22,155 nt of DNA from Macrostomum lignano (GCA_002269645.1 NIVC01001850.1:1-22155), one strand, 5' to 3'. Positions 1,099 through 21,651 are shown, counted from the first letter of the stretch. The notes: generated by a model from the sequence alone, not told the origin. Numbers and translations are program-made.

Positions 1099-1462
1099 GA
1101 TGAATTCCTGACTTGTTGCTTGAAAGCATACTTCTAAGCAAATATATTCTCTGTTTCACAACTCACAACCCATGCAAATACGAGTAGAGCTCAAAAATTG
1201 AAGAGGCTTTTCTTACTGATAGCTCAGGTGTGTGAAACTTACCTCACCTTCGCCATTTTTTCTGGGTTGAGCAGCTCATTGCTTAGCAGGCTGAGCAGCT
1301 GAGCACACGATGGCACGATGAATTCTTGAGTTTTCGCTTGAAAGCCTGCTTCCAAAGCAAATAGGATCTAAACTCACCCGGGCAAGTACGAGTAGAGCTA
1401 AAAAATTGAAGAGGCTTTTCTTCCAGATAGCTCAGTTGTGTGAAACTTACCTCACCTTCACC
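1099..1462. repeat. Imperfect tandem duplication (~210-bp period) that copies the 3' end of gene A exon 4, its donor and ~150 bp of intron
   Basis: 1099-1253 resembles 1317-1462; e.g. 'tacgagtagagct.aaaaattgaagaggcttttctt...gatagctcag.tgtgtgaaacttacctcaccttc' occurs twice. Confidence 0.85.
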
Positions 1463-3148
1463 TAGGGAACTTGATCCGTTCACGCCTGCCTCGCCAAGCC
1501 TTCCTAAAGAGATAATTTGCACACAAAGCTTAGGCATTCAAAATGCGAATTTCAAAAGTGAGACTTTAAACACTACCATCTGAACTCACCATCGTATGCG
1601 AAGGACGCGCCACCACCACCGCCAGCAGCCATCAAGAGTTGATTGTTGAATGCGTCGTACGCGAAGCTGCCTCCACCGCCGCCGCCACTGTTTGACGACG
1701 AGTCTGCCGGACCGCCAGCCTGACCGACAACGATAGACAGCTCTGTTCCCGCAGTCAGGTTGACATTGCCAACGACCAGGGCTCCCCTGCCGCCGAACTT
1801 GCTGCTACTAACCAGGGTGTTGTCGCCTCCTTTTGCTCCGCTGATTTCGATGCGATAGCAGCCGGTAAAGTTTATAATTACTTGCTGGATGAACCGAACC
1901 GACCGGTGCTTGAGTCTGGAATCAGAAAAAACAGTTGAGCATTGTTGAGTCTTGCTGAACCGTAGAATCATGAGCAATTAAAACAGAAGGATGTAAAACT
2001 TTAAAACTGGTTTTGAAGCAAAATTTCCACAGATTATTAGTTTCGAGTCATTCTACTTCTGTTGTCTCTGCATGAAATTGTGAAAAACAATGAAACACTT
2101 GCTTGAAAAAACGCGAGTGAAATTGATTTTGGCTGTTGACTTGATTAGATCTTCAAAATCCGGTAGTTTCCACGCGACTGTGTCAGTCTCAGCTCCCAGG
2201 AATCTCTGCTCGTTAGTTCCAGTCGCCGATCCTGACTCCCCAGACACGGTCACCAGCTGGCAGAGACCGGCGCCCTTCCAGAACGCGCCAGCAGAGCAGC
2301 TCATCAGTCCGCATCGCATGACGCATTCCTGCACTGTCGTGACTCCGGTGACGTTCAACACTTGGCTAGAGACTGTCCCGTTGATGACTAGGACACCAGA
2401 GTGCTTGACGTAGCGAGTTGAATTACGACAAGAGCCTAACAGTTTGTAAATGAAAATTTATACATGTAAACCTGACGTCGCCAAGGACTACTTAAGTAAA
2501 AGGACAGGAAAGTACGTTTCTTGGGAAATTTTAGGAGGCAGGTTTTACTGTTAAATACGCTCGTACATTACTGAGAATATATATAAGCTTAAAAAGATTA
2601 AAAATGGATCAAGTCGACTTATTGGTTTTATGAATCTATCAAGGACAACTTTGACGGGAAATGACGGGAATTAATAAATTAGATGGGCCTCCAAATATTG
2701 TCGTTTCCTGTCACCGAGTATTGAGTAGTCTCTAGAATCTATTTTATCATTCTGTTGAACATTTTTATTTCATAGTCAGCCAAGATTTCTTATTTTCTAA
2801 CCTTAAAGGTTTATGATTATCAATTTCTGCTATAAGAAAGGCAATACATATAAAGATGAAGATCATGGGTCTGCCTCCGATCAGAGTCAATAGCAATTTT
2901 TGTTCTGAAAAAAAAAACTAAAACCGTTCTTTTTATTGTTTTTTTCGGCAAAACATGCCCCTAAAATTTTTCAACTAGCGTATTTTACCGTCTTTCTAAT
3001 TGAATAATCCTTGGACGTTATATGCACAAACAAAGCAAAATAGTAACGAAATAAAACAAAATAAAACGGATCTCTCACCCTCCATCGAGCCGATGCAGGA
3101 GCAAACGAAAGCGCAAAATATGATAATTCTAATGTGCGTTATCTTCAT
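1451..3148 (-). CDS. Gene A: secreted PAN/Apple-like + ALK/LTK-type glycine-rich protein, exons 1-4 only (3' exons not in window); carries an apparent 1-nt frameshift
   Basis: Exon 1 3148-3079 encodes the signal-peptide-like MKITHIRIIIFCAFVCSCIGSME, followed by G|GTGAG. Exon 2 2435-2103 (ttag|GCTCT...) encodes GSCRNSTRYVKHSGVLVINGTVSSQVLNVTGVTTVQECVMRCGLMSCSAGAFWKGAGLCQL...INFTRVFS; its donor at the gene-B-equivalent position is GCAAGT. Exon 3 1915-1590 (tccag|ACTCA... to GATG|GTGAGT) encodes ...GCYRIEISGAKGG...GGRGA...LSIVVGQAGG...GGGGGGSFAY...LLMAAGGGGGASFAYD; it is 326 nt, 1 nt short of a multiple of 3. Exon 4 1503-1451 (53 nt) encodes GRLGEAGVNGSSSLGEGE|GTAAGT. Intron positions and phases match gene B. 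Confidence 0.8.
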
Positions 3149-5044
3149 TTCTTTCTAATACGCTCATATAATTGAGTCTTTCTGAGGCAACTGTTCTTCT
3201 GCCGACGTAGCAGATGATTCTTTTCCAATATGCTCAGAAATCTTAGTCACTCTCAAGGCATGACTATATATATGTGTATATATAAGCTGCTCACGAAGTT
3301 CCTGTCCATTAAACCTATCGCTTTTCGTCGCAACCAATCAACGCATTTTTCGTAATTTTATCCAACCACGCTGCCATGAAGGCTTCATTTCTGACCAGAA
3401 GTAATAAAACTTGCTTGTAGCTGCCACGATGGATTCGTAAGAATAAGCTTAATGAAAAACTCGGAGGCCATTTTCAAGGTCTCAATTGGTACGCTACTTC
3501 TTTTGAGAGATCAAGTATCGCAGAGTTTTTTACGCGTCTATCTGGCAAGCTGACTAGATCAAATTTGAATTCTGATCAACCTATCTGTCCAAATAGGCTA
3601 GGCCAGTGATCCTTAGTGAACTCGTTTCTAAAATTATTTTAGAATATTATATTATCTATCTATATATTATATTATTATTATAGATAGTATATAATTAGTT
3701 ATAATATAATAGTAGCGCTAATATAATAGTTATAATACATTATATATTAGCGCGTATGTTGTAATGTAGTTTTTGCCTGGCCTTATTTAGAATATACTTT
3801 GTCTGGGGATTCTTGTGCTAGTGAGTCCCTACGAGTATTATACACCGCTTAACGTACATGTACTACGTACGTGCGTATTACAGAACTGATTACCCAGAAA
3901 ATACATATATACTGAAATATTTAATGACCTAAAATATGATGGATAGTTCTAATACAACCGCCTGTCTATCAAATATATCAATCGATAGAAGCTTCTGATT
4001 GGATGAGCTCAGGATGACTAGCGCGACTCTGATTGGCTGATCTCAAGACCTCAAAACCATCTCCACCTGGCGATCATAAATCATAAATCATAATTGAAAG
4101 TAGTTAGTTAAACGTAGGAGACAAATTGAATGTCAAAACCCTTAACTTTCTGAAGCAGACGTGACTGCAGTATATCGCAGCTCAATAAAATCAAATGTGA
4201 CAATACAATACAGTAGAAGATACTATGATGATACGAAACTGCCAGCTACGTCTTGCATAGTTATATGAGAGGCAGTGCAAACAGTATAAGAATAACTGCT
4301 GATACAGGCAATAGAATTCTACAATCAGGTGATGCTATGCACAGCAAATATGAATACTCGTAAAAATGAGAAGCAGCATTGTTCAGCTGACGTCTGCAAT
4401 GTCAACACAATTCAATAGCTTTCAGAAAAACTAACGTTCAGAAAGCTAGTTAAAAAAACTAGCTTTCAGCTTCTTAGCCAACCGCGGGCCAAAAAAGGAG
4501 CAAAAAGGAAGCCACAGGGGTGTCGACGAGGAAGCAGTCTGGCAAGAAGCAAATGTATTTGAAGCAAATATCACGATGCGATGTCACGGCGTACATGTAT
4601 AAAAGAACGGACGTGGAAGCGCCTTGCAATTTTCCGTGAACAAGCCCCAAATGAATGTGGCGAACTAGGCATCCAGATGTGTTTAAGCTGCTGTCTCCCC
4701 GCTTTTAGTATCTAAGCAATCTGTCAACAGTCGCTACAGGCTTACATGTATGTTGCTAAGGCATCAATCGATAATTTAAGCCCACATACGGAAACACACA
4801 CAGGCATCACGCAAGCCAAATAAAAAGCATAAATCGCTTCTGCTGTTAATGCACGATCTCCATCTGCGTTTCAGAAAAATGTCGGATCAGTCGTTTACTT
4901 ACTGACTACTGACTGACTCACTACTTTGTGAAACATTGTCTATTTACAGTGTATACCAAAGAGACGGACAACGTCCCATTCCGTTTGATAGTGAGTAAAA
5001 AACAAGTAGCGATATAGCATCCTTACACTTCTACTGCCATTTAG

Positions 5045-5207
5045 GAAAGCTGGGACTTATATACTAGTATAGTTGCTTCATTTAAACCGGAATTGGAGAT
5101 CTTTCTAAGTCTTCGAAATCTAAATAGCACCCCCACTCACGAGCTTCACGCGCACGGCGGCTGTTGTGCCGGCTGGCTGGGCAGAGCTGTACTTTCGAGG
5201 CTGGGTC
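5045..5207 (+). pseudogene. Remnant F: degenerate exon 4/5-type sequence of the same family, 3' part deleted
   Basis: 5156-5191 translates GGCCAGWLGRAV versus gene B GGCGAGWLGKPT. An upstream frame gives TGIG as at the start of B exon 5. 5085-5150 and 5186-5207 align with D at 17165-17225 and 17231-17253. After 5207 the sequence jumps to a homolog of ~18180 ('attgaaagag..gc'). Confidence 0.6.
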
Positions 5208-5278
5208 TTTTAATGCTTGAATTGAAAGAGGCATTGTATATCCACCTTTGCTATGTCCTAATACCTTGTTTTACGTTT

Positions 5279-5537
5279 GGGGTTGTAGCCTAGTGGTTGG
5301 AGCGTCGGACTCACGACTGAAAGTTTTCAGCCTGCTCTTAACAATTTGTGTCTTTAAGCAAGAAACTTAACTCTGCATTGCTTCAGTTCACCCAGCTGTA
5401 AAATGGGTGCCCCAGTCCTTGGACTGAACAGCCGTACGCAGCATTCAGATGCGCTGCGCAGTAGCTGCGGCTGAGCTGTCGGTTGCACATCTGGCCCAAT
5501 TGGGGCAGGTGTAATCAGTTATATTATTATTATTAAA
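5279..5537 (+). mobile_element. tRNA-derived CORE-SINE (MIR-like core), B-box degenerate
   Basis: A-box-like TAGCCTAGTGG at 5286-5296. The segment 5347-5408 'tgtgtctttaagcaagaaacttaactctgcattgcttcagttcacccagctgtaaaatggg' resembles the MIR/CORE consensus (tgtgaccttgggcaagt.acttaacctctct..gcctcagtttcctcatctgtaaaatggg, recalled from memory). (TAT)n tail at 5522-5535. Absent from the paralogous position near 18245. Confidence 0.8.
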
Positions 5538-6415
5538 ACCTTGAGCTTTGTCAAAGCTTTCGTTAAATTTAATTGAACTCACGTCTCGCTACTAAACTAT
5601 CACAGTAGTGTCGACCGTCTTTACTCGATATTTTATGGCACAAAATGTCAGAATTTAACCATCCATAACAGCTTTTATAATCACGTATACTTTTGTCTGA
5701 CTACATCAACTGCAATCAAGCAAGGACTATCTGGCACATTTACGAGCTATACTTTTGGATTGCAATTCAAACCACAGTGGTTAAGTCATAATAAATAGCC
5801 AGCAGGCAAGTTTATTTTTCTTTACGAATTATTCCCAACAAAGAATCACATTGAACTTAGCTCCGGCCTAGCTAGTTGCTTTAATAGGCACAGTGTAAAG
5901 GTAAGGTATTAGGTGATATTGTTGATATATTGTAATGAGAGATAGTAACTTTTTAAGGCATAAGAAATGCCCACAATTTTAAACGCTACAAATTGCTTTA
6001 GAAATAGTGCAGCCCCGTCACCATGCAAAACTAGCTAGCTGGCAGAGTCTATATCGTTTAACGACACTCATGTAACTTCCATGGAAATGCTCTCATTTTG
6101 GAATGTACAGTACAGCATGAAAAATGTACAGCAAAGCCTATTGCAGTGTCAAAATACATCGCCAAGATACGCCCCCTTCAACTAACTGAAGTGCTTGATG
6201 CAAGAGGACAACGACAAAGTCAAAACTCTGCATGGAAAATTCCATTGGCTAGTATTTTTTACGATGGAAAATTACTAGCATCCAGTTGCAACTGGGGAAA
6301 AACTCAATCGATTAGCTTTACCATAAAGAAGAAAAATTTCCTGCAATCTAAAATTTCTGTCCGTCAGGACTGTACGCAACTCTATAGGCATCAAGATATT
6401 AACTTCTGTTAACAG

Positions 6416-7253
6416 TAGAAAGACCCACGCTACATGTATTTTTCACTTTATGGTGAATCCATATTGGCTCAATAATCTGGGTCCATCTGTCGTCGAGGCC
6501 TTTGTTCTCAGCATCCCAGGCACCAGTATCCTCTTCATCACCGTCTGGAGCATTGACGGCGACCGTCGGGACTTTCAACGGTGTGCCACCACGCGGCCCT
6601 GACGAGCTGACACCCCGAACATCGTGATTTCTCTATCCAGGCACCAAACTAGGCATGTTTGCATATTATAAAATGGTCCTGAACCATGTTCAGCATTCAA
6701 GCTCTGTCTGGACGACCTTCGGGACCTTCAACGGAGTGCCCTGACGAGCTGGCACCACCAACATCATGCTTTTTCTATCAAGGCCGTGTGGTAGAACTCC
6801 GTTGAAGGTCCCGAAAGTCGCCTGTATATCTACAGGTCAGCCTAGAGGGTCGCCATGATTGTCCATTTCATTCACCGATTATGTATACTGACTGAATGCT
6901 GCATGCAGAAGAGGATTTGATGAAGGGGACCCTGGTGCCTGGGATGCTGAGAGCACGTCCCTGCGACTGACATGCATAGGTTGTTGAGCCGATGTGGTTT
7001 CATGATGAGATTTTGTGAGCAGAAAAATTTTGCCAATGTTGGAGGTTTTTGCCACCGGACACCCCGAGGAGAATTTTTAATATCTCGACGATGCCGATTT
7101 TTCGTTATTCTCGAAGTTGCTTCATCGAATAGAGAGGAAAATTTTAGCACGTGTTTTGGATTTTCATGGCAATTGGCTGAATATTTTTGGAGATCCACCA
7201 AAGGAAAAATGTGTGTATTTGAAATACATTTTCACATTGAAACTTGTGGTGGC
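6416..7253. mobile_element. ~840-bp copy-1-specific segment with nested inverted repeats (non-autonomous DNA element-like)
   Basis: Replaces ~70 bp at the paralogous site (19124-19187). Outer inverted repeat 6506-6540/6918-6952 includes a perfect 21-mer tctcagcatcccaggcaccag. Inner inverted repeat 6713-6737/6796-6820 includes a perfect 19-mer tcgggaccttcaacggagt. Direct repeat 6568-6630 vs 6720-6775. No TSD identified. Confidence 0.5.
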
Positions 7254-8123
7254 GAGCTTATGCATTAAATATACTTGACATCTATCATAATCTTTTAGAC
7301 AAAAACGGTTACAGTAAAACAATACCAAGATTAGGTGTATATTCCAATTTTTTAACCGCTGAATCGATTCGAATGGCTACCAGAGCAATATTCGAAGCTG
7401 ATTGACAGGTGCATGTGTACTGTGGTGGCGAACAGGCATAATCAAAGCTGGAAAATGTCAGATTTTCGTTATTTCAGTTTCGCGTGCATCAAAGAAAGTA
7501 CCTTGTTTTAGGAGCTTTTGCCTCAGCTTGCTTGTGCTAGAATATTTGTGCCTCAGTCAAATATGGCTGCATCTGATCTCGTTTGAGTACATGCTCAAAA
7601 AAGTCTTGCTCTCTCGAGACTGAGGCTATCCTTTCGTCTATGACGCCCACTCAGCCTTAAGTCTTAGGCCCAGCAAGTTGCCTGAGAAGCATGACGACTT
7701 GAAGCCTTATTATTCCAGAAAAGGTTTTACTCTGTATGAAGCGTCACCTGAGTCATGCAGTGAAGTGGGCGAGATAAAAGTCTACGAAGAGGAAGAAAAT
7801 TTAGTAGAAAAGCGAAACTGGGGAAACGCCTAAAACAAATAAAAAAACTTCTGCACAGTTGAGAAAGTCAGAAAGTCAGAGAGTAGCATCCCTCCGTGGC
7901 TGGACGTACAAAGCGAATTGAAGTGTACTGCAGAGACCGGAGTGGGACAGAGACACTGAATCTATAACCTCGCGCGCCTTGACAACGGCTCAGCAAAAAA
8001 ATCAACAGAAGGGCCTCTGAGAAAATTTTAAACAGTAAAGATTTGTGAGCGGGAAAAAGCTCCTCGTTCCAATTCGGACGCACAATTCCAGTACTGAGAG
8101 ACGGCAAACACACAACTTTCGAG

Positions 8124-11100
8124 ATGCGTCAGTCGAAGACATTGCTACTCTTTGCCATCGGTTTCTGCTGCGTCATGGTCTCCGAAGGTGTGTGATGAAG
8201 TTGATTTTTTGCTCTAAAATAGTTTATCAGCAAAATATATCCAGGTTTTCGTGGCAAAGAAGTACTTTGAATAAATAAGAACTGCTATGGCGAGGCAAGT
8301 CTTCCAGATCCGGCTTGCTTTTTTAATTTGTAGCGAGACGATATCTAAGAAGGCGATGATTAAAGATAAACGATACTTCATTTGCTTTTGCCTTTTGAAA
8401 TTATTCTTCTCAGGGCGTCTAATAACTAGAAATCCTATAGGCCTCTTGAATCCCATCTTTGCGTCTCGGGGTTGCCTAAGTTTATACTTGAAACTGTTTT
8501 ACCAATGGTCAGGTGATATGCAGAATACGACTTTGCCCCCCCCCCACTCCATGTTGCAATGTAGGCGCTTGCAACCGAACTCGCTATGTGCAACACAACG
8601 GCGTCCTTGTTGTCAACTCGACCATCAGTAGCCAAGTCCTGAATGCCTCCGGAGTGACTTCAGTTGAAGCATGCGCCATGCTGTGCGGAATGAAATCCTG
8701 CTCTGCCGCCGTGTTCTGGAAGAGCAGCGATCTGTGCCAGCTGGTGACGGTGTCTCGCGAGCCGGGATTTGCTGGAAACAACGAATGGAGACTACTGGGC
8801 TCGGAGACTGCTGAGGCGGTGGTGATGAAGCTGGAAAACTTCGAAGAACTGATGAAGCCTCGTATTATAAATGTCACTCGAGTGTTTACAAGTGAGAGTT
8901 CAGCCGCATGTAAATTTGCATAGAGTATCGCACACTTGGTGCACTTTTTCCGTCTTCTTTAAGTCGGCTCGAGCTGGCCACAAGTTCCTAATTTGCGCTA
9001 TCCCATGTTCGTTTTAAATTCAATCCATATGAGCATATTTGAGTCAGCAATAACTAATTGAAACATGCATGGATTTCAGACAATGGAACGGGTCGAATCG
9101 GCTCTGTCCAGCTGGTGACCATCGACATTGCCGGCTGCTACCGGATCCAACTCGCTGGTGCCAAGGGCGGCGACAACACGTATGTCAGTCCTGACGAACT
9201 CGGCGGCAGGGGAGCTCTGGCTGCTGGAAACGTCAGTTTGTCAGTCGGAGTTCAGCTGTCGATTGTTGTCGGCCAGGCCGGAGGTCCGTCGCAGAGCAGC
9301 GGCTACTCTAGCGGCGGCGGCGGCGGAGGCAGCTTCGTGTACCGGACATCGAACAATGAGCTGCTGATGGCCGCTGGCGGCGGCGGCGGCGCCTCGTATG
9401 GGTATTCCGGTAAGCATGCGATTTTTATTGTATCTTAACTGAGACGTTTGATAGTTGCTTTTGCCATATTGTCGTATGCAGCTATTCAATAATGTATTTG
9501 TGAAAAGTTTCAAGAAACTGAAGCCGGTAAACAGTTTAGGGAAATGGCGACTTAAGTATCTTTTATCAAGTATATTTTTAAGTAGTCCTTGAACCAGGGA
9601 CGAAACTACACTGAAGAATGCCTCAGTCTACTGGCGCATTTCTATTGTAAAATTGTGAAATCTTCATGGATCTACAGGCCAGAGTTCATTGATGGTGCAG
9701 GCTGCCAGAAATATTGCAGAATTTTTTCTGCTTCACAACACTTTAGCCGAGACAGTCTTCAATTGACGACGATCGCATGCTAAAATTCTTATGAAAGCAA
9801 AAGTTGGCACTTATATATACATTCGGAAAAGTAGAGTGAGCAGTATATGCTCGTAACAACTTTGAAAAAAACAATTTAAAGTTAAAAAGTTTTTGTTGTT
9901 GCAAAACTTTAAGGTACGCTCGTACTCAGCAACATGGTTAAATTTCCAGCCCGAAAACAGTTGTCAACTATTCTCGGATCTCAGTCTTAAGTGACGCAAT
10001 TCACAACACACCTGCGGTTCTCGTCTCAAAGCTGTGGGTGATACAGCTTAGGCTGGTGAGGGGACAGTGGAGAGTTGTGGCTTGAGCTGCATTACAGCTG
10101 CCACTTGTTAACCTCTGGTTTCGTGAAAACGTTAACATGATATCTGCGTATTTAAGGTTGGTTCAGCTATAGAAATTTCTGAGCCTTACCTTCTCCTGCA
10201 GTAGATTGGGTGAATGAGCGATCCCTGCAATGAATGAACTGACTGTAAATGAATTTCAGGTCGACCCGGAGAGGCGGGCACAGGAGGCTCAAACTCGTTC
10301 GGGACTGATGATGTAAGTTCTACAGATTGTTCGATTCGAATTAATTGTTTGCTGCAATTCAATACAGTTGACATCTCAGCAATGGCAAGTAATTAGCTAA
10401 ATAAAGCAGATTGGACACTGCAACAGCGCTTCTTTGAATTTCACTTTAGTCGATTTTTGCTGCAATATAGAGCTATGTAGATACTTTTACATCTTTTCAA
10501 CAAAACAATTTGACAATTACCTTCCGAAATTCACAATTGCAAATGAAGCCTGCATAAGTATGCGATGTGTTTTCCCGGATTTTCATTTACACTGTAAATG
10601 CTTGTCCAGCTATTTTTTAGAAATGCTATGGAATACGTAAGTTATTCGAATCGCATTAGTGTATTGTGAAGACTTCTTTCTCAGACGGTTCTGTTTTGAC
10701 AGCACGGTTGTATGTCGCAGTCCCAGCTGGTGCAGCTGTTTATTTTTATACATACGTACATAGAAACTTTTCAGGTTGAGTTATTTAGAGATTTCCGATT
10801 TTAATTGAAGTAGCTACACCTGTACATGCTTCTTAGTCTGCGCCGGCACAGATAAAAGGCTTTCGTTCCTTTTCAATCTGGAGCCGTCTAGTAGAGTAGG
10901 TGTAGTGCTGCTACCAGTCCCTTCGGGTCTCAGCCTTCACATGACAAGGGGAAAGCGGCCCACCAATGAAGCCGCTAATGACCGCTAGACAAGAGAACAA
11001 GACACCCAGGCACTAGTGCATCCACTAGTGCCGCTGCACAAAGAGCAAACCAAGAGCTGCAGGCTGAGCCAAGCTGCCCAGCGGCTGCAAATAAGAGCAC

Positions 11101-11664
11101 AAGGGAAACTGCTGACGAGTGAGACACCAAACAGTAATCCTAATGGCTCACTGCATAATCTTAGCGTCATTCCGCTTCAGTTCTACAGAAAGCAAATGGT
11201 TTCAAAAACATACTCGACATCGCTTGCAGGCAGCCCAAACTGGCATCGGAGGCGTTAACGGACAGCCGGGCAGCAACGACCAAAGCACTGCGGCTACCGA
11301 TAGAAACCCTGGAGGCTGCGGAGCCGGCTGGCTTGGCAAGCCTACCGCCGCCCGCACAAGCACCGAATACGGAGACAGAGGCGGCAGTCGCGCCGACGGC
11401 TGGGTCGGCGGCAGAGCCGGAGACACGAGTCCCGCCGACGGCGGCTTCGGCGGTGGCGGAGGCGGAGGCGCGGCCACCACCAAAGGAGCGGCAGGAGCCG
11501 GCGGAGGCTACAGCGGCGGCGGAGCTGGGGCTCGCAGCGACCACGCCGGAGGAGGCGGCGGCTCCTTCTGCGGCGGCAACGGCTGCGTGGCCACAACGAG
11601 TGGCAACACGGGCAGCGAGCACGGCTTCGTGCTGCTGCAAATGATCGGCAGCGGCTGCGCTTAG
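8124..11664 (+). CDS. Gene B: complete 5-exon gene, 402-aa secreted PAN/Apple-like + ALK/LTK-type glycine-rich protein, no TM or kinase
   Basis: Exons 8124-8187 (MRQSKTLLLFAIGFCCVMVSE), 8565-8891, 9080-9409, 10260-10312 (53 nt, GRPGEAGTGGSNSFGTDD) and 11230-11664. All introns are GT-AG with phases 1,1,1,0; 1209 nt including TAG, no internal stop. PAN-like motif: SVEACAMLCGMKSCSAAVFWKSSDLCQL. Motifs collinear with the ALK/LTK Gly-rich domain: TGRIG, GCYRIQLAGAKGG, LSIVVGQAG, GGGGGGSFV, LLMAAGGGGG, GGFGGGGGG, GGGYSGG, GGSF, HGFV. N-glycosylation sequons NRT, NST, NAS, NVT, NGT, NVS. Confidence 0.9.
10806..11133 (-). mobile_element. Short solo-LTR-like element in gene B intron 4, related to both ends of the 13534-14481 LTR
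   Basis: 10905-10942 'gtagtgctgctaccagtcccttcgggtctcagccttca' vs 13629-13666 'gtagtgctgccaccagttccttcaggtctcggccttca'. Right end 'gggaaactgctgacgagtgagacaccaaaca' vs LTR end 'gggagactgctgacaaagtgggacgcctaaca'. TG...CA termini; flanks ttaat/gtaat are a possible 5-bp TSD with one mismatch. Confidence 0.65.
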
Positions 11665-13512
11665 CCGTCGATTTTGAAACGCAACTCATCTTTTCAAGCG
11701 AAAAAATGAAGGTCAAAGGAAAAACTTACTTTCGTTTTTGAGGTTTCAGTGGTTTTAAGGATGCTCTATTGTTTGTTTTTTGGATACAACGTTTATTATT
11801 TCGAATGTACGTAGTTAGACAAAACTTTTTTTCTCCCTTTAAAAGTGGGGATGTGTGTTTGAATTTCTATCGGACTGATAATCTGTGGGTTTAAGTTAGC
11901 ACAATGCTTACATTTACTATATGATTCTAAATACAGGGGCTAGCTTGTCGTGGGATTTCTGCCCCATGAGGTCCATGAAGAACTACTCTCTAGGCACAGA
12001 GTAGCTACTTATCTCGATAATTCATGCAAATATGATTTTCTATCTGAAAGTGTTCGACATGTTTCCTTACCAATTCAACTCTAAAGCTTTTTTGATTGTT
12101 TACTTACTATTGCACTCTCTGGTTAAAGTTTTATTTTTTTCAAAAGGCAGAGCATTTTTTTGACACGTGAAAATCTTAATTCAAGTTCACAATACCCTCT
12201 ACCATATAGTTACGGAAATAGCTCCGCGGATTGAAGATTGCTCAGATGAATTGAACGATTGGCCTTGAGCCAACTACATGAACGCTCGTAGTTACATCGA
12301 TTTGAGTAGTCTTCTACAAGCGGAGCTCTGGCCTTTATGAGATGAATTTTGTATTTGCACGCCTACTTTTTAGTTGAACTGGATGCATAATGTGCAGTTT
12401 TATCCAATGTTTAGCAATTATATTGTTTCATTTTGTTTTACTGTGTGACAGTGTCAAAATTCATTGATTTGTTATACTCGTATATACAATCGCATATACG
12501 AGCCTATTTTGACGAAAAGTCACCGTCCTGAATATTGTTTGGATTACAACTTGTAGTTTTACGTTTATAGAATCTATCGGTCTGTACACTGTTTGTTATA
12601 TTCTGTCTGAATTTATTTATTCAATTTTCTATTTAAGCTTCTAAATATACCATCGCTTATTTATTCAAGTAGAGCAATTCCTTCGTGAAATATAAAAAAA
12701 CTAAAAATTTTTTTTCTGAAGTATTCTTGTAATCAGTTGTTGGAATACTATATTTAAACAGCTAATATTCAGACCTGGAATATTATTCCACCTAATTCTC
12801 AAATGCCTAGGCAACACTTTTTCCTGCGCTGTTCTTCTGATAATTGTAGTTTAGTGTTGGCTCACATTGCTCGACTTGACAACTGTATTTTGCCTTGCGA
12901 AAAGCAACAAAAATGAGTTTTTTCTGAATCATAAAAACTAATATCCGTTTAACAATTGGAAATCGATCGCTTATGCTTCTAGCAATTAATGGCTGAATTT
13001 TTTTAGAGAAATATCCATTTAGCGGCCACGCAAAAGAACAGCATGCGGGATATCAGTTGTCCTGAAGAACGAAATCGAACTGAAGAAGTTTAGGAGTTAC
13101 GTGTACGAGCCATGAAGAGGCGATGCTTCAAACTTAAAGGGCTTGCAAAGTACATGCATGTATGCAGTTCCACTGAAGCCGTTCATCCCTTGTTTTAGAC
13201 TTACACTTTAGAGTGAAATGCTGCTTTAATAGAATCCAAGCCATGCAAAGCCCTTGCAGCTTCTCCAGGCCAACTGTATGTAGACTCTGTTAGCATCTTT
13301 TTGTTTCTATTACGCTCGTAGTTGCCAAGTGATCAAGAAAATTTCTCACGATCAAACAAAAAATGTCGGCGAAATCGATTCTCCGAGCTAAAACGAGAAT
13401 GCGATAGTCACGTACTTTGTGTTGTACAGCCAAAGACTTGGGCTTCCAGTTGTAAGCGCACAGTTGCTTTTGTTGTACTTGGGGTTTTCTCGGGGTGGCC
13501 TGGTAGGTCTTT

Positions 13513-13532
13513 GAATCCCACCGCTGCCACCA
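13513..13532 (-). other. Retrotransposon primer-binding site complementary to the tRNA-Leu 3' end
   Basis: Plus strand reads GAATCCCACCGCTGCCACCA, the 3' end of eukaryotic tRNA-Leu(AAG/TAG) plus CCA. On the minus strand it reads ...TACAACA t TGGTGGCAGCGGTGGGATTC, 1 nt after the LTR terminal CA. Confidence 0.85.
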
Positions 13533-13533
13533 A

Positions 13534-14481
13534 TGTTGTACCTGTGCTTCTCCTGCTGTACAGCGCAGTGATTTGGGCTCTCCGTCTTCTCACTCGGAAG
13601 CCTTCTTAGCTCTTAGTAGCTAGCGTAGGTAGTGCTGCCACCAGTTCCTTCAGGTCTCGGCCTTCAGTGAGGTGAGCTTCCCGTCGGAACGAAATAACGA
13701 AGTCAACGAACACAGCACCAAGTGCAGATTTGCAGTTCAACGTACTAGGCGTCTCGTCAGCGGTACCTGCCGGGCTTGGTTGGTAGAGGGAGGGCTGAGT
13801 TAGCCCCTCGTAGGCTTGGGGCGCTTGAGTCGGGACTCAGTCAGACCAATAAGAACAGAACTTAACGCACACAGATGGGCTGACACTCAGAACTCGCGGT
13901 CTCGGGAAAACGACTCCTTGACGGAAACAAGGGGGAGAGGGCTCCTATTTATAGCCGGGAAACACCCACGCACAAGACCTCGTGACTCGTTCTATTTTTA
14001 GAACTGACGTCACTTGAGAGTCTTGGGCAGGGTACAAGCGTGCGGAAGACCTCGTGACTCTTTCTATTTTTAAAACTGACGTCACTTGAGGTCTCCGGCC
14101 AGAGTACACGCGGCTGTGACTCAGTTGCTATTTTAGCAACATGAGTCACTCCTCTCCTTAGAGAAGGGAGGGGTCCGAAAGCACGTGATTCTCCCGGTAA
14201 ACAGGGCCAACGAGTGCAGTAAACATGTTTACTGCACTTTAGGACTCGAAGAACGCAGAGTCTGTCATGTGACTTGCTCACATTACAGAGGAAAACGGGA
14301 CGGGAACGAAACAGAGACAGCCCACAGCAGAGAAGCTGAGGGCTGAGAACAGAGACGCAGAAGGGCAGAACAGGCCAAGGGCAGCAACAGACGGGCCAAG
14401 GGGGGCGGGAAGCTGACCAGCGGCAGACAGCAACCCAGGGCGAGGGCGAGGGAGACTGCTGACAAAGTGGGACGCCTAACA
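13534..14481 (-). mobile_element. 5' LTR (~948 bp) of a truncated LTR retrotransposon, probably gypsy-type; no gag/pol present
   Basis: On the minus strand it begins TGTTAG and ends TACAACA (TGTT...AACA) and is followed by the tRNA-Leu PBS. It contains a duplicated enhancer-like repeat and a TATA box. The right end is confirmed by homology to the 11133 terminus. No coding ORF follows the PBS. Confidence 0.78.
13946..14090 (-). promoter_or_regulatory. LTR promoter: TATAAATA plus 72-bp-period direct repeat, each unit with a CRE palindrome
   Basis: TATAAATA on minus at 13953-13946. Repeat units 13974-14018 and 14046-14090 ('aagacctcgtgactc.ttctatttttaRaactgacgtcacttgag'). TGACGTCA at 14005-14012 and 14077-14084. 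Confidence 0.65.
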
Positions 14482-15312
14482 TCAACTAGCGGATCACTAC
14501 ACTTTATTTATATTTTAGTCACACTACAAAAACTACACGATCGATATTTTAGAGCCAGAGATGTCACGTGCTCAATTATACATTATACAGATAATTTATC
14601 AACCTACTTTCATGAAAGTGGCGGGGACAAGAATAATATTAATACTGTTAGCATTTACGTTATACCATACTTATAGTAGAAATATCAGCGGAACAATTAT
14701 ATTATCGTTAAGTTAACCCCTCAATATACGATACAAAACTGTTTGAATTCGTTTTCTTTACACCCAATTTTTTCTGGTCATACAAGCTACAGTCTGCATT
14801 GGAGCGTGATAGTATAATAGAGGCCTTTATAGACATCGACGGATATTGCTTTCGCAGGCGGCATTCAAGTGAACCAACGTGCACTTCACCAATACGAGGC
14901 TCACATAATGTGGCAGTACCATTTTGCATGCAAACAAATTAAAACTATTGTTTACCATTTCAGTTATGATGTTAGAATAGCTCTCTACAATTCTCTATCG
15001 AGTGCTCAAATCAAATCAAACAAGTACGCAAATATTGCCATAAAAGCATACCTCTGAAAGCTTGGATTCATTTTTTCCAACAATTTAAGCTTTAGTTTAA
15101 GAAAAAGTCTTGAAACGAGAATTAAGCATTGCACCAAATACGGAATGCTGTAAAGAAGGATTTTACAGAAAGGTACTTGTAGCAAGATTCGTACTATTAT
15201 TGTCTTGTTCAGACTTTTGTATAATTCAAACGAACAAAGAACAACTGCTCCTTTTTGCAAGCAAGCTTCAATTAGTTCAGTATGCTGTTAGAGAAGTGAG
15301 GCCTCCTTGGTC

Positions 15313-15631
15313 TCAAGGACACGAGCCAAGATTCACCAGACTCAGCAGCACAGAGCCGTGCTTGCTGGCCGTGTTGCCGCCAGCACTGCCGGTGCAGCCG
15401 CTGCCGCCGCAGAATGAGCCGCCGCCGCCTCCGCAATGGTTGCCGTAGATACCGGCTCCGCCGCCGCTGTAACCGCCGCCAGCTCCGGCTGCGCCAACGA
15501 AAGAGCTGAAGGCCGTACCAGCACCTCCTCCACCGCCGAAGCCGCCGCAGGCGATGCTGCTGCCACCGGCGCTGCCTCCAGCCCAGCTGTCGGTTTGACT
15601 ACCGCCTCGATCGCCGTCGTAGCTGTTGTAC
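15313..15631 (-). CDS. Exon C: intact terminal exon of another family member (C-terminal half of the Gly-rich domain); 5' exons not found in window
   Basis: Acceptor aattcgcag|G, then an open frame of 105 codons: YNSYDGDRGGSQTDSWAGGSAGGSSIACGGFGGGGGAGTAFSSFVGAAGAGGGYSGGGAGIYGNHCGGGGGSFCGGSGCTGSAGGNTASKHGSVLLSLVNLGSCP-TGA, collinear with the end of gene B. It is not in the ORF track in this frame because it has no start codon. Confidence 0.8.
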
Positions 15632-16093
15632 CTGCGAATTATTGATGCTCTGTGATTTTATTGACAACTAGATCAGTGATGTGACGAAAGGAATTCAGCA
15701 CTGGACTGTCTCATAATATGAAATTTTCAGCAGTAAATAAAGCAAATTTGTTTTTCGCGTCACAAAGTTGATTTGAGAGTCAATCGAACTCATCTTTTGA
15801 TATCCAGATCCAAACATATATATGCCCAGTTCCGGAGAAAATTGCTAAACATTTTACAGGTAAATGCAAAAACCTTTATGAAATATTTTATGATGCGATT
15901 TTAGGGCCGTTTTACTGGCTCTGTAATCGGTTTTACCTGATAGGGGCCCGGTGCCTCTGCCCTCTGGGTGGGGGGGGTGCGGTGTGCGTTGTGCGTGATG
16001 TTGTCAAGGACGACTTAAGTAGAAGGGCGGGAAACCTCGTTTCTTAGAAAAGTTTTGAAGGCACTTTTTCCCGAAAAAATACACTACGGAGAT

Positions 16094-16609
16094 AGGAAGT
16101 TTTCATTTTTTCAGCACAAAAATTGTTATTCGTTTGATAGGAGGCAGATCCAAAGTTCATCTTTTGATATGTTATGCCTTTTTATTGCTCTATCGATATT
16201 TATAAAGCTTTTCGTTCAGAAAATTAGGATTCTATGTTAATTTTATTCTACGTATATTTCCTGTATCTAAAAATCACAAAAATGCATGACACAGCTCCAA
16301 TATTTGGTTTTATGAACCTATTTTATCATCTCTGTTACAAATATTTGCTACACAGTCGGGTAAGAATGATAAAATAGACTCATGAAACCAAAGAGCCGAG
16401 CCGTGGCATTCTAATGTATTTCAAGCACAAGACACGCGAAAATATACGTAGAATAAAAAATTAACATAGAATCCTAATTTTCTGAACGAAAAGCTTTATG
16501 AATATCGATTGAGCAATAAAAAAGGCACAACATATCAAAAGATGAACACTAGATCTGCCTCCTATCAAACGCAATAACAATTTTTGTGCTGAAAAAATGA
16601 AAACTTCCT
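16094..16609. repeat. ~515-bp foldback / MITE-like inverted repeat
   Basis: Outer arms 16094-16260 and 16438-16609 are near-perfect reverse complements (both shadow ORFs end SIFIKLFVQKIRILC). Inner arms 16303-16329 and 16366-16392 enclose a 36-nt loop. Related fragments occur at 2621-2640 and 2736-2756. Confidence 0.9.
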
Positions 16610-17100
16610 GCATGCTTGCATGTGTAGCTAAAGGCTGAATATCCATCAGATAAATCTGTAACGAAGCCATCAGAATATCTTTTTAAAAAACAGTAAATGA
16701 GGCCTAGCTATTGCACAAATGCAGATGCAGGAAATTACAAAATGGAATATTGTTTAGGATTATATAATGACCGCATTTACATGTAGTAGCACCATGGCAC
16801 CCAATTATGGTAATTTAGATTTAAACGATTGCGATTTGAAAAAGAGAAGAAGAGAGAAAAATATCTGATAGCAAACACTGTGACGATGATTTCTGCTAAA
16901 ACTTGAATAATAGCTTTCCACTTGAATAACAGAATTTTTCGATTGCTAATTGAAGAGAATGTCAAAAGTCCAATTTGGACACTCTTACAATTTTCATAGC
17001 TGGCAATGGAGGACCGCAGGTGGCGGTGGAGTCTTTGCCATCGTCTTGGAATAATCACGATAAATTCTATCTTATATTTTTTATGTATTGTTATATTCAG

Positions 17101-18118
17101 GAAAGCCAGGCAACGTATAGAAAATAATGGAAGAAATTAAACTGGACTCCTTAGTTGCTCCACTTCAACCAGAAATGGAGATCTTGGAGGTCTTCAACAA
17201 TCCAAATAGCTCCCCTCATAAGTTTCTTGATGCTGTGCATCCGAGGCGGGGTCAGGTCGATGGCGACCGAGGCGAAAGTGTTGCTGGATTGCTTAGCAAT
17301 TGCGGTTTCGGTGGAGGCGGTGGTGGAGGATTCGGCACAGGCTCTAGCGATTGCGGTTTCGGTGGAGGCGGTGGTGGAGGATTCGGCACAGGCTCTAGCG
17401 ATTGCGGTTTCGGTGGAGGCGGTGGTGGAGGATTCGGCACAGGCTCTAGCGATTGCGGTTTCGGTGGAGGCGGTGGTGGAGGATTCGGCACAGGCTCTAG
17501 CGATTGCGGTTTCGGTGGAGGCGGTGGTGGAGGATTCGGCACAGGCTCTAGCGATTGCGGTTTCGGTGGAGGCGGTGGTGGAGGATTCGGCACAGGCTCT
17601 AGCGATTGCGGTTTCGGTGGAGGCGGTGGTGGAGGATTCGGCACAGGCTCTAGCGATTGCGGTTTCGGTGGAGGCGGTGGTGGAGGATTCGGCACAGGCT
17701 CTAGCAATTGCGGTTTCGGTGGAGGCGGTGGTGGAGGATTCGGCACAGGCTCTAGCGATTGCGGTTTCGGTGGAGGCGGTGGTGGAGGATTCGGCACAGG
17801 ATCTAGCGATTGCGGTTTCGGTGGAGGCGGTGGTGGAGGATTCGGCACAGGATCTAGCGATTGCGGTTTCGGTGGAGGCGGTGGTGGAGGATTCGGCACA
17901 GGATCTAGCGATTGCGGTTTCGGTGGAGGCGGTGGTGGAGGATTCGGCTCAGGCTCTAGCGATTGCGGTTTCGGTGCAGATGCGGCGGTTACAACGGTGG
18001 TGGAGTCGGTCTGTGTGGCGGTCAGGCCGGTGGCGGCGGCTCGTTCTGCAGCGGAAATGTTGGTAGAGAGCAGGACCGAGTAGTTCTGCGTCTGCTGGCC
18101 GCTCACCCAAACAGGTGA
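17101..18118 (+). pseudogene. Remnant D: degenerate 3' part of a family member with a 51-bp repeat expansion
   Basis: ttcag|GAAAGCCAGGC gives GKPGN (exon-4-like) followed by an in-frame TAG. DGDRG at ~17259 and CGFGGGGGGG follow. After a 1-nt slip near 17982 the homologous frame continues GGYNGGGVGLCGGQAGGGGSFCSGNVGREQDRVVLRLLAAHPNR-TGA (18116-18118). Several deletions relative to B. A possible exon-3 end remnant (TAGGGGVFAI) lies at 17013-17042. Confidence 0.75.
17298..17975 (+). repeat. Tandem array, 13 full + 1 partial copy of a 51-bp unit encoding DCGFGGGGGGGFGTGSS
   Basis: Unit GATTGCGGTTTCGGTGGAGGCGGTGGTGGAGGATTCGGCACAGGCTCTAGC; unit starts at 17298, 17349 ... 17961. Variants: AAT in units 1 and 9; GGA for GGC in units 10-12; TCA for ACA in unit 13. 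Confidence 0.98.
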
Positions 18119-19560
18119 TGACTGCGCTACTATTTTTGCTCGATCCAAGAGTTTGTCCGTTGATTCTTGTTCAAACGTGTTCATATTGAAAGAGAGGCTT
18201 CGAAATTAATCCATGTACATATGAAATCTACTTTTACCAACTTCCTAAAACCTTTTGCCTGTTAAGAATTTGTTTTATTGACTCATTTCTCCATACTAAA
18301 CTAAAGCAGTAGTGTTGACCGTCTTTGATCGTTATATTTTGCAACGGATTGTGAGTAATTTAACCATCCATAACAGCTTTTATAGTCACGTGTACTATTG
18401 TCTGAAACTGTATCGTAACTTCTACACATAAATTGTATCTGACACATTAATATAATGATGATGATGGATTTGTAATGATCGTACATGACCGGTAATCAGT
18501 GATGACCTTTGAAAATTTAACTTCCATTACCGTACATTCCATTAGCGTACTTTAACTTTTCCGCAAAATTCTAGAACGTTCCATAGCGCAATAAAATATC
18601 TTTAAACAAATCAGATACAAAATTCATAATATAAATGCACTTCTCCTTTATTTCAGTGAAATAATGAAACTATATTTTATGTAATTGATTTGCTATTACT
18701 ACAATTTTCCCGAACATTTCCCGAACAGAATATTTTACGGCTCATCCAGTATAAATTTACAGCAGGTATTCAACGACACCAATGTAACTTTAATGGAAAA
18801 TGCCCTTATTTTGTAGTAAACAAGTGAGCCAATGAGCTAAGCTTTATATACCAAAACCCATTGCAATGTCAAAATAGCAGCCTTACATCGCCAAAGATGC
18901 GGCCCTTTCAACTAGCTGAGCGGGTGAAGTGCTTGAGACAAGAGGGTAAGGCAAATCCAGGCCCTTCATGAAAAATTGCTAGCAAGCAGTTGCAGCTGGG
19001 AAAAAGAAAAACTCAATCCGTGAGAATTACCTTAAAGAAGGAAAAGTTCCTGCAATTTAAAATTTCTATCCGTCAGGACTGTATGCAGCACTATATGCAT
19101 CATGATATTAACTTTTGTTAATAGCATTAACGGTTGGTATTTTAATTCTTTCGTTTAAAAAATTTGCATATTTAACCTTGTGACTTAGAGCTTATACATT
19201 AAATATACTTGAAATCTATTAATCTTGTAGACTAAATGGGTACAGTAAAGCAGTGCCAAACTTAGTTATGAATTCAAATTTTGTAGCTGCTACATACATA
19301 GATTCGAATATCTACCAGAACAATATTTGAAGTTTATTTACAGCTGTACATGTGCTGTGCTTGGGAGCAGAGCTGGAAAATGTCAGTGTTTCGTTACTTT
19401 AGTTTCGCATGCATCAAATAAAGTACCTTATATTAGGAGCTTTGCCTCAGCTTGCTTGTGCTACGAGCGTTAGAATATTTGTGCCTCAGTCATATATGGC
19501 TGCATCTGATCTCGTTCTGAGTTCACGCTCAAAAATAAAAAAAATCTTGCTCTCTCGAGA

Positions 19561-19763
19561 CAAGGAGTACAGAAAACTCAGGACGCAGAACTTAAACTTG
19601 GTATGACTTTTTACCATTCTAAGATCAGTTATATTGCTAACCTTGAAAAGTTATTGTTATGCTAATTAGTTAGACTTTTTACCATAGAGAATGCTTTCAT
19701 ACGCGCATTGGAAAATTTCTACAAAGTTTAAGTTCCGCGTCCTGAGTTTTACAGTAGTCCTTG
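19561..19763. mobile_element. MITE-like element 1 (~200 bp, ~39-bp terminal inverted repeats)
   Basis: 19561-19599 caaggagtacagaaaactcaggacgcagaacttaaactt vs 19724-19763 aagtttaagttccgcgtcctgagttttacagtagtccttg. Absent from the paralogous site near 7620. Confidence 0.7.
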
Positions 19764-19955
19764 GGCCGTATGCAGAAAGCCTAGTCCAGACTAGCTAGTC
19801 CGGACTTGGGTAGTTCAGTCTATAGTCTATGGTCTAGCTAGCCTAGTTCTGCTATAGTAGACTGGTCTAACTTTGTATTTCTGCATACCAAATCCAAGTC
19901 TAGACTAGCTTTTCAAGACCGGACTACCCTGGACAGAGCTTTCTGCATACGGCCC
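19763..19955. mobile_element. MITE-like element 2 (~190 bp, perfect 18-bp terminal inverted repeats)
   Basis: gggccgtatgcagaaagc ... gctttctgcatacggccc; interior rich in repeated ctag/agtcc/agact motifs. Absent near 7620. No TSD recognised. Confidence 0.7.
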
Positions 19956-20412
19956 ATAGGCTTAGCAAATAGCCCGAGAAGCATGAGGACTTGAAGACTA
20001 ATAGTTCAGAAAAGGTCTTACTATAAGAAGAAGCGTCATCGGATTCAAAAGGTGAAGTAGGACGAAAAGGAAGAAAATCTAGTAGAAAAGGGAAACTGAG
20101 GGAAAAGCCCTAACCAAACTAAAAAAACTTTTCGACAATTAGAAAGTCTGAGAGTCAGAGAAGAATCCCTCTCTGGATGGACGTAAAAATTCAGTTTAAA
20201 TGTACTGCAGAGACATGACCTGAATGGGGACTGGGGACAGAGACACTGAGTCTTACTTTGCGCACCTTGACAACGGGACAGCAAATAAAACAAGTGAAGG
20301 TCAGTTGAGAAAATGTAAAACAGTAAAGCTTTGGGAGCGGGATACAGCACCTCATTACCATTCTCACTCACAATTTCAGTACTGAGAGTCGGCAAACACA
20401 CAACTTTAGAAG

Positions 20413-21651
20413 ATGCGTCAGCCACAGGTATTGCTACTCTTCGCCATCGGTTTCTGCTGCATCATGGTCTCGGAAGGTGCGTATTGAAGTTGACTTTTTG
20501 CTCCTAACTAGTTAATTAATTGGAAAACATATCCAAGTTTTGACCTGAAAAAGAAGAACTTCAAATAGAAGAGAGAACTAATCGATATGGCGAGCTTTTC
20601 CGATTGGCTTTGCTTGTTTCATTTTTAGCAGGGGCTACCTGAGGAGGACGATATTTAACAATCAACAATTTTGGTCGTATTTGTTTCGGAGACTAAATCT
20701 CAAAGCGAAAATTATATTAAAGACATCTAACGACGAGGCCCCTTGAGTTAAACGTTTCACCGCTGGACAGGTAATAAGCTGGCCCCCTCCATAACAATTG
20801 CCATACAGGCGCTTGCAACCGAACTCGCTATGTGCAACACAACGGCGTCCTTGTTGTCAACTCGACCATCAGTAGCCAAGTCCTGAATGCCTCCGGAGTG
20901 ACTTCAGTTGAAGCATGCGCCATGCTGTGCGGAATGAAATCCTGCTCTGCCGCCGTGTTCTGGAAGAGCAGCGATCTGTGCCAGCTGGTGACGGTGTCTC
21001 GCGAGCCGGGATTTGCTGGAAACAACGAATGGAGACTACTGGGCTCGGAGACTGCTGAGGCGGTGGTGATGAAGCTGGAAAACTTCGAAGAACTGATGAA
21101 GCCTCGTATTATAAATGTCACTCGAGTGTTTACAAGTGAGAGTTCAGCCGCATGTAAATTTGCATAGAGTATCGCACACTTGGTGCACTTTTTCCGTCTT
21201 CTTTAAGTCGGCTCGAGCTGGCCACAAGTTCCTAATTTGCGCTATCCCATGTTCGTTTTAAATTCAATCCATATGAGCATATTTGAGTCAGCAATAACTA
21301 ATTGAAACATGCATGGATTTCAGACAATGGAACGGGTCGAATCGGCTCTGTCCAGCTGGTGACCATCGACATTGCCGGCTGCTACCGATCGAACTCGCTG
21401 GTGCCAAGGGCGGCGACAACACGTATGTCAGTCCTGACAAACTCGGCGGCAGGGGAGCTCTGGCTGCTGGAAACGTCAGTTTGTCAGTCGGAGTTCAGCT
21501 GTCGATTGTTGTCGGCCAGGCCGGAGGTCCGTCGCAGAGCAGCGGCTACTCTAGCGGCGGCGGCGGCGGAGGCAGCTTCGTGTACCGGACATCGGACAAT
21601 GGGCTGCTGATGGCCGCTGGCGGTGGTGGTGCGCCTCGTATGGGTATTCCG
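20413..21651 (+). CDS. Gene E: close paralog of B, exons 1-3 (rest beyond window); two 1-nt deletions in exon 3 (pseudogene or consensus error)
   Basis: Exon 1 20413-20476 (MRQPQVLLLFAIGFCCIMVSE, G|GTGCGT). Exon 2 20809-21135 reads identical to B exon 2. Exon 3 21324-21651 is 328 nt versus 330 in B, with a G missing at ~21387 (taccg-atc) and at ~21631 (ggtg-cgcc). Confidence 0.85.

Follow-up and report, generated by a model that had tools for sequence, protein, structure and literature searches.

A predicted secreted protein with PAN and ALK/LTK-type glycine-rich modules encoded in a gene cluster of Macrostomum lignano

Introduction

Most biologists know the glycine-rich domain (GRD) of ALK and LTK, Pfam family PF12810, only as the part of two cancer-relevant receptors that binds a cytokine. 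The same domain occurs widely as an extracellular module, and its thousands of kinase-less members make up an uncharacterised family. Here we analyse one such member, gene B, which lies in a 22,155-nt stretch of the Macrostomum lignano genome (GCA_002269645.1, NIVC01001850.1:1-22155; hereafter the window, with coordinates counted from its first letter). Our best explanation, which we hold with moderate confidence, is that B encodes a secreted protein in which a PAN/Apple module precedes a TNF-like/Gly-rich (TG) module, that it belongs to the kinase-less branch of PF12810, and that its role is one of extracellular binding or recognition.

The best-described relatives are the receptors themselves. 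In ALK and LTK (PDB 7NX0, 7NX1, 7LRZ, 7MZY, 7N00 and 7LIR) the TG domain consists of beta-sandwich strands at both ends and a long Gly insert, as in the family of B, and the order of the Gly motifs (GGGGGxSF, AAGGGG, GFGGGGGG, GGGY.GG) is shared with B. However, the MAM/LDLa/heparin-binding region of the receptors is replaced in B by the PAN module. B also lacks the membrane-proximal EGF-like module that follows the GRD, the transmembrane helix and the tyrosine kinase domain, and it is only 21-26% identical to ALK/LTK.

Outside animals, the tail fibre gp24 of cyanophage Pam3 recognises the host with a TNF-like and Gly-rich tip that resembles C. elegans ALK (PMC9608196). Such tips, like the related polyglycine adhesin gp38 of phage S16, have the C-terminal TNF-like and Gly-lattice module that is seen in B and use it for target recognition; in it, a conserved Gly stem carries variable distal loops (PMC9608196). 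The phage fibres differ from B in being trimeric and chaperone-dependent and in having neither PAN nor signal peptide, so that the likeness is one of fold and motif. The sole paper we found that names PF12810 outside ALK concerns a nematode-killing fungus, in which three copies were reported and no function could be inferred (PMC4859500).

Proteins that combine PAN and GRD are already catalogued in UniProt and NCBI, in corals (Porites harrisoni ABFA07_017308, Pocillopora verrucosa, Montipora foliosa, Porites lutea) and in M. lignano. The coral proteins resemble B in having PF00024 at the N-terminus and PF12810 at the C-terminus, in stopping after the last strand and in an identity of 37-44% across the GRD. 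They differ in extra GRD inserts (e.g., a VEVKGGQST...AAxLG loop) and in the EGF modules that often stand between PAN and GRD, of which B has none. In M. lignano, the entries named 'Apple domain-containing protein' (A0A1I8HRN4, A0A1I8GD17 and related ones) share with B the order of signal peptide, PAN-like module and TG, as well as the same C-terminal end with a penultimate Cys, at 43-72% identity. None is identical to B; the closest one reaches 64-72% over part of the B sequence. These database models are fragmentary or fused, whereas that of B is clean and full-length. A preliminary description of the window had suspected that similar entries might exist, which proved right; the novelty that it implied did not hold, and what is new here is a family member with a good full-length gene model.

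Results and Discussion

Structure of gene B

At least six family pieces had been noted in these 22 kb, and tblastn searches of the window with the spliced B protein and Macrostomum homologs located six loci of the PAN and Gly-rich family (A, F, B, D, E and C). Gene B is the only one that is demonstrably intact, while the other five are partial or decaying. It comprises the following exons:

8124-8187, plus strand: exon 1, with the ATG and the signal peptide (MRQSKTLLLFAIGFCCVMVSE-G) and a phase-1 donor GAAG/gtgtgt, at the same position as the donor of copy C
8565-8891, plus strand: exon 2, the PAN/Apple module, 327 nt, symmetrical phase 1-1, preceded by a poly-pyrimidine tract and AG
9080-9409, plus strand: exon 3, the first part of the TG domain (TGRIGSVQ...GGGGGGSF...AAGGGGG), with a PF12810 match
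10260-10312, plus strand: exon 4, a 53-nt mini-exon encoding GRPGEAGTGGSNSFGTDD, bounded as tttcag/.../gtaagt
11230-11664, plus strand: exon 5, the remaining Gly-rich domain, the last beta-strand, the conserved C-terminal Cys and the TAG at 11662-11664

All splice sites of this model (8124-11664, plus strand) are GT/AG and the phases are consistent. It gives a protein of 402 aa, exactly the length in the preliminary description, which had likewise read B as a complete gene with a signal peptide, a PAN/Apple module, a Gly-rich domain and a stop. The mini-exon fills the family-conserved stretch GQPGEAGxNGxxSxG, and copy A has a mini-exon of equal 53-nt length. An exon with phases 1-1, such as the PAN exon, is the classic form of a shuffled extracellular module.

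Two other models were considered. A four-exon version of 401 aa was rejected, as about 20 family-conserved residues were absent from it; the mini-exon at 10260-10312 was then located. A version of 420 aa, in which exons 1 and 2 are joined at 8189/8513 (18 residues more), was set aside. The 8187/8565 junction was chosen because A, B and C have a common phase-1 ag/GC acceptor, which in B (8565) lies behind the pyrimidine tract; the position and phase of this acceptor are the same in all three.

B is an intact five-exon gene for a predicted secreted, probably N-glycosylated protein of 402 aa with a complete TG module. One might instead assume that in this highly duplicated genome the whole cluster, B included, is made up of duplicates that are not expressed, and that the frame of B is a recent survivor by mere chance. 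All loci but B (five of six) show truncation, frameshifts or degeneration, and the 630 bases past the B stop contain no canonical AATAAA-type signal. Against this, B keeps five open exons with canonical sites, the length of its mini-exon is retained in a copy (A) that is only 38% identical, all nearly invariant residues of the family are kept in B, and the Cys pattern is conserved. We regard chance survival of the frame as decidedly unlikely.

Secretion and the C-terminal end

The N-terminus of B (MRQSK-TLLLFAIGFCCVMV-SEG/A) has the charge, the hydrophobic core (aa 6-19) and the small residues at -3/-1 before Ala23 that are expected of a cleavable signal peptide. Outside the conserved beta-strands, no second segment of B is of transmembrane grade; the only other hydrophobic window falls in a conserved beta-strand region. 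The mature chain contains six N-X-S/T sequons and ten Cys.

At the other end of the protein, the TAG at 11662-11664 comes 13 residues past the last strand (EHGFVLLQMIG), and after the Gly-rich domain only ...GFVLLQMIGSGCA remains. Four Macrostomum paralogs terminate within a few residues of the end of B, each with a Cys just before the stop (penultimate), and the coral relatives terminate directly after the same last strand. Additionally, no kinase-coding sequence was found in the whole window, where tblastn with the human ALK kinase domain gave only noise (best E 0.32). Because the paralogs end at the same point and the window holds no kinase-coding sequence, we consider the stop of B genuine. 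As far as the sequence tells, B is not spliced past the TAG and ends without a transmembrane helix or kinase, in agreement with the preliminary description.

The opposite view would be that B is the 5′ part of a larger receptor gene, with the TAG skipped or edited and the transmembrane and kinase exons located downstream or outside the window. Its appeal lies in the automatic names 'receptor protein-tyrosine kinase' and 'protein kinase domain-containing' that some M. lignano entries of the family bear. However, the entry named 'protein kinase domain-containing' (P0007) has no kinase domain in Pfam, and those named 'receptor protein-tyrosine kinase' are fragments of 223-281 aa with the Gly-rich domain only. 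The 100 nt that precede the TAG contain no consensus donor (GT[AG]AG-type), and the frame beyond the stop is closed several times over. Further downstream, the first family pieces to follow are a reversed relic and a frameshifted one, and the end point of B is shared by four independent paralogs. Given all this, we lend hardly any credence to a hidden receptor gene.

Names such as 'receptor protein-tyrosine kinase' and 'PE-PGRS family protein' occur on a number of kinase-less GRD proteins (P0008, P0012, P0007 and several phage proteins). Such labels are a misleading transfer of annotation from the Gly-rich domain.

Domains and predicted fold

In Pfam, the ALK_LTK_GRD family (PF12810) matched B with 32.4 bits against a cut-off of 24.5, over aa 166-375 in the numbering of the first gene model. 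Single exons gave still higher scores, namely 36 bits for exon 3 of B and 41 bits for the corresponding exon of gene A. For PAN_1 (PF00024; cut-off 21.4 bits), the open reading frame of the B PAN module alone scored 22.9 and the copy in gene A 17.5.

A family profile was built from 116 members. B has all of the ordered poly-Gly motifs GGGGGGSF, AAGGGGG, GFGGGGGGG, GGGYSGGG and GGGGGSFC, and their positions are invariant or nearly so among these members. When PDB sequences were searched with the profile, chains of the ALK ectodomain were found at E 8.6e-9 and C. elegans SCD-2 at E 3.9e-7; B as a single sequence reached LTK at E 0.013.

The TG fold was modelled with AlphaFold2 on P0004, the closest full-length paralog of the same architecture (45% identical), from an alignment of 115 sequences. 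The GRD was predicted with a local confidence score (pLDDT) of 85-95, with beta-strands at both ends and a long middle without regular secondary structure. In a Foldseek search of the PDB, all 21 significant matches of the model were ALK/LTK TG domains (E 1e-10 to 8e-7), with template-modelling (TM) scores of 0.39-0.61 normalised to the target and 21-26% identity; no other match fell below E ~1. These predictions support an ALK/LTK-type TG fold for the C-terminal module of B, as the preliminary description had proposed.

The high Gly content of this module (30% in the C-terminal 260 residues of B) would also suit a structural or material protein, i.e., a component of mucus, adhesive, eggshell or matrix with a mechanical role. 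Flatworms secrete adhesives and mucus, B appears to be secreted and glycosylatable, its family is multi-copy, and very long multi-GRD proteins exist elsewhere. However, the Gly-rich part is confidently predicted as a compact globular domain and not as a low-complexity repeat, and its Gly motifs are not repetitive but invariant and specific to their positions. With 402 aa, the protein is also small, and in PAN it has a classical binding module. A mechanical role therefore seems to us rather unlikely, although it deserves to be kept in mind.

For the PAN exon of B itself, AlphaFold2 predicted (pLDDT 78.6) one central helix packed on a sheet, with flanking strands. Nearly all of the top ~45 Foldseek matches of this model are modules of the PAN superfamily, at TM scores of ~0.5; they include the HGF N-domain, plasminogen PAp, the factor XI apple domain, the SML-2 lectin, Wsc1, the PAN module of a fungal oxidase and the leech antiplatelet protein. 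The PAN core (C-x3-C ... C ... C-x-L) is recognisable as well, since invariant Cys of the paralogs align with Cys58, Cys62, Cys67 and Cys79 of B, which are in register with coral PAN. As to the outer disulfide of the Apple type, which joins the first Cys of a module to its last, the PAN exon has the first Cys (Cys24) and no sixth; Cys24 could conceivably pair with the conserved C-terminal Cys401.

Two further Cys, Cys150 (window ~9131, GCYR) and Cys288 (window ~11318, GGCGAGW), are found in all Macrostomum paralogs, while coral relatives usually have Val at both positions. This pattern suggests a lineage-specific disulfide that would tie a TNF-like strand to the Gly lattice.

Place of gene B among its relatives

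The spliced B protein was searched against a database of 5.8 billion proteins. Its ten best matches are all from M. lignano (38-72% identity, none identical). With the kinase-less GRD proteins of corals and Macrostomum, B shares 40-45% identity, at E-values of 1e-28 to 1e-77, against 21-26% with ALK/LTK. The family profile, searched against 1.84 billion cluster representatives, retrieved 4,166 of them at E<=1e-3 and 885 at E<=1e-10. In most full-length members the GRD ends within a few residues of the C-terminus, and the modules upstream of it are PAN, EGF repeats, EGF with C-type lectin, DUF285 or further copies of the GRD. By sequence comparison, B belongs to a large and old kinase-less branch of PF12810, outside the ALK/LTK receptor lineage.

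Structure comparison extends this picture to viruses. The P0004 model had 64 significant Foldseek matches among predicted viral structures, including virion and tail proteins of cyanophages and 'glycine-rich domain' proteins of giant viruses. The best phage match reached a TM score of 0.64 at 29% identity. These matches are in line with the published tail fibre of Pam3 (PMC9608196).

These relationships bear on the proposal, made in the preliminary description, that B could act as a decoy or ligand carrier for an ALK-like pathway. The free TG module of such a soluble protein would bind a flatworm ligand of the Jeb/HEN-1/ALKAL type and so modulate an ALK receptor. It is true that the predicted fold is that of the ligand-binding TG supradomain of ALK/LTK and that B, by its sequence, is secreted and has no kinase. 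However, the similarity of B to its kinase-less relatives is about twice that to the receptors (E down to 1e-77 versus 0.013), and the domain is common where ALK signalling is absent, e.g., in the nematode-killing fungus (PMC4859500), in phages and in giant viruses; the ALK-decoy role is unlikely for these two reasons. Additionally, the loops between the Gly motifs, in which any binding surface would be expected, differ even from one Macrostomum paralog to the next. The proposal was thus not borne out, and we consider it very improbable.

The corals provide a comparison at the level of gene structure. The Porites harrisoni gene (JBDLLT020000386.1 10001-13388) has three coding exons with phase-0 introns, and its GRD of 299 aa lies in a single exon, whereas in B the GRD is spread over three exons and the introns are phase 1. 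The Porites locus, inspected for clustering, holds a single gene in 23 kb. The PAN modules of flatworm and coral are barely alignable (hhalign E 0.047). Because these modules align weakly and the exon structures differ, we lean towards separate assembly; the PAN and GRD architectures of the two groups may have arisen independently.

Predicted function

We now return to the binding or recognition role that we favour for B. PAN modules elsewhere bind glycans or proteins, as HGF does with heparin and as apicomplexan lectins do. In the two settings for which a function of the TG module is known, ALK and phage fibres, it provides a surface for binding on a rigid Gly lattice. The GRD is usually combined with modules of adhesive or lectin type. 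Comparison of the Macrostomum paralogs shows invariant Gly motifs with variable loops between them. It is from these observations taken together that we infer a binding role.

In such a protein, the contact partner of the PAN module would be a glycan or a protein. The TG module would form a rigid polyglycine-II lattice with the invariant Gly motifs as its scaffold, and the variable loops between the motifs would provide the binding surface, by analogy with ALK and its cytokine and with phage tips and their host receptors. Likely settings would be mucus or surface recognition, innate defence and adhesion.

Several points weigh against this interpretation. The PAN match, which the preliminary description had expected along with the well-supported Gly-rich one, is borderline: full-length B scores 20.1 bits, 1.3 below the Pfam threshold, and the structural matches of the PAN model are of modest E-value (2e-3 to 1e-1). 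The TG model is that of a paralog with 45% identity and not of B itself, and the root-mean-square deviations of its Foldseek matches are high (6-8 A). The splice pattern of B derives solely from sequence and homology, and the alternative 8189/8513 junction would give the longer protein. The binding function itself comes from analogy and domain context, and we found no literature on function, expression, localisation or binding of kinase-less GRD proteins, those of Macrostomum included.

A broader idea, which we put forward as speculative and on balance unlikely, is that kinase-less PAN-TG proteins form a fast-turning-over secreted recognition family in flatworms, active in innate defence, surface recognition or reproduction, and that they represent the free-standing form of the domain, later captured by ALK/LTK. 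The polyglycine lattice would then serve as a stable scaffold on which the loop tips diversify as in phage tail fibres, and the duplications, gene conversion and decay seen at this locus would be traces of the process.

It is fair to add that the window on its own changes nothing that is known: the architecture is in the databases, nothing points to a specific new mechanism, and B is a fairly ordinary family member. Nevertheless, Macrostomum is a genetically tractable genus in which RNA interference, in situ hybridisation and transgenesis can be used. Owing to its clean full-length model in such a genus, B could be a convenient entry point to the function of the free TG domain.

Copies A and C

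Two further loci retain more than one exon. Copy A is on the opposite strand, near the left edge of the window:

2099-2435, minus strand: PAN exon of A, 59% identical to the PAN module of B (tblastn E 2e-44 jointly with the Gly-rich exon)
1590-1915, minus strand: Gly-rich exon of A, open, with the nearly invariant SSTGRxGS motif in another frame
1451-1503, minus strand: mini-exon of A, 53 nt, encoding GRLGEAGVNGSSSLGEGE

The 1,450 bases left between the mini-exon and the window edge yielded no last exon of A. The shift of frame in the Gly-rich exon reflects either a 1-nt deletion that is compensated at a shifted upstream donor or the state of a pseudogene. With the deletion and a shifted donor, the SSTGRxGS strand would be read as LKHRSVRF.

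An intron of A contains a tandem duplication of 208 bp (1168-1254 / 1376-1462), which copies the end of the mini-exon together with its gtaagt donor and thereby creates a decoy splice donor.

Copy C, as a whole, was recovered by tblastn at E 4e-68:

20413-20476, plus strand: exon 1 of C, the signal peptide, 82% identical to B
20809-21135, plus strand: PAN exon of C, 100% identical to the PAN exon of B
21324-21651, plus strand: Gly-rich exon of C, with two 1-nt deletions; the later exons lie past the window end

The deletions stand opposite B 9143 and ~9388, both within short runs of G, and a premature stop follows at 21608-21610. C duplicates B in tandem, at a distance of 12.24 kb downstream (segment ~6057-9994 versus 18769-22155). 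The identity of the two copies is 62-88% upstream, exactly 100% over 8565-9142 (= 20809-21386) and then 97-88%. The identical tract measures about 580 bases and takes in the whole of intron 2, which points to a recent gene conversion (or an assembly artefact) and not to purifying selection.

The limits given in the preliminary description, 1451 and 21651, coincide with the end of the A mini-exon and the end of the third exon of C.

Relics D, E and F and history of the cluster

The remaining loci are fragments of last exons, and two of them flank a palindrome:

15313-15621, minus strand: relic D, the 3′ two-thirds of a last exon (YDGDRGGS...GSVLLSLVNLGSCP-stop), 64% identical to B aa 305-399 (E 3e-37)
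16094-16609, no strand: palindrome with arms 16094-16329 / 16366-16609 that are 85% identical, at the centre of the inverted duplication D/E and midway between the two relics
17256-18118, plus strand: relic E, a mirror copy of D with the same start point (VDGDRGES), tblastn E 2e-22
5123-5209, plus strand: relic F, a last-exon fragment of 29 aa (HAHGGCCAGWLGRAVLSR) with no other family sequence flanking it, tblastn E 6e-6

Relic D has a stop codon 12 codons upstream, and in relic E a frameshift precedes the C-terminal part (17984-18118). Since D and E face apart across the palindrome, they represent an inverted duplication of a piece that was already truncated. The palindrome itself seems either to mark this duplication or to be a foldback element that mediated one.

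Relic E also contains a minisatellite (17294-17976) of 13.4 units of 51 bp, 99% identical to each other, which derives from the coding GFGGGGGGG motif and keeps the frame (17 codons). It gives rise to long open reading frames on both strands, one of 318 aa from an ATG at 17127 on the plus strand and a proline-rich one of 310 aa on the minus strand.

Judging from these sequences, two duplications built the cluster, a tandem one of 12.2 kb (B/C) and an inverted one that copied an already truncated last exon (D/E). They were followed by probable gene conversion (B = C over 8565-9142), 1-nt deletions, expansion of the minisatellite and decay. The cluster had been called an expanding one under birth-and-death evolution. 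The first term is overstated, because only one gene is intact: C is frameshifted, A has degenerated and continues past the window edge, and of D, E and F only fragments remain. The second is a fair description, as the cluster shows duplication in tandem and in inverted orientation, probable gene conversion, frameshifts and relics.

Other content of the window

The GC content varies between 33 and 57% across the window, and intron-exon structure is present. Neither tRNAs nor Rfam families were found in it, and seven other long open reading frames outside the family had no Pfam match worth noting. A single gene family, arranged as a tandem and inverted cluster, is the only recognisable coding content of the window.

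The anonymous sequence between B and D holds a 72-bp tandem repeat of 1.9 copies with 88% identity (13974-14112). Upstream of B (6454-7002) there are short inverted repeats (6454-6540 / 7002-6918) and direct repeats (6560-6642 / 6713-6784), which may be remnants of a small mobile element.

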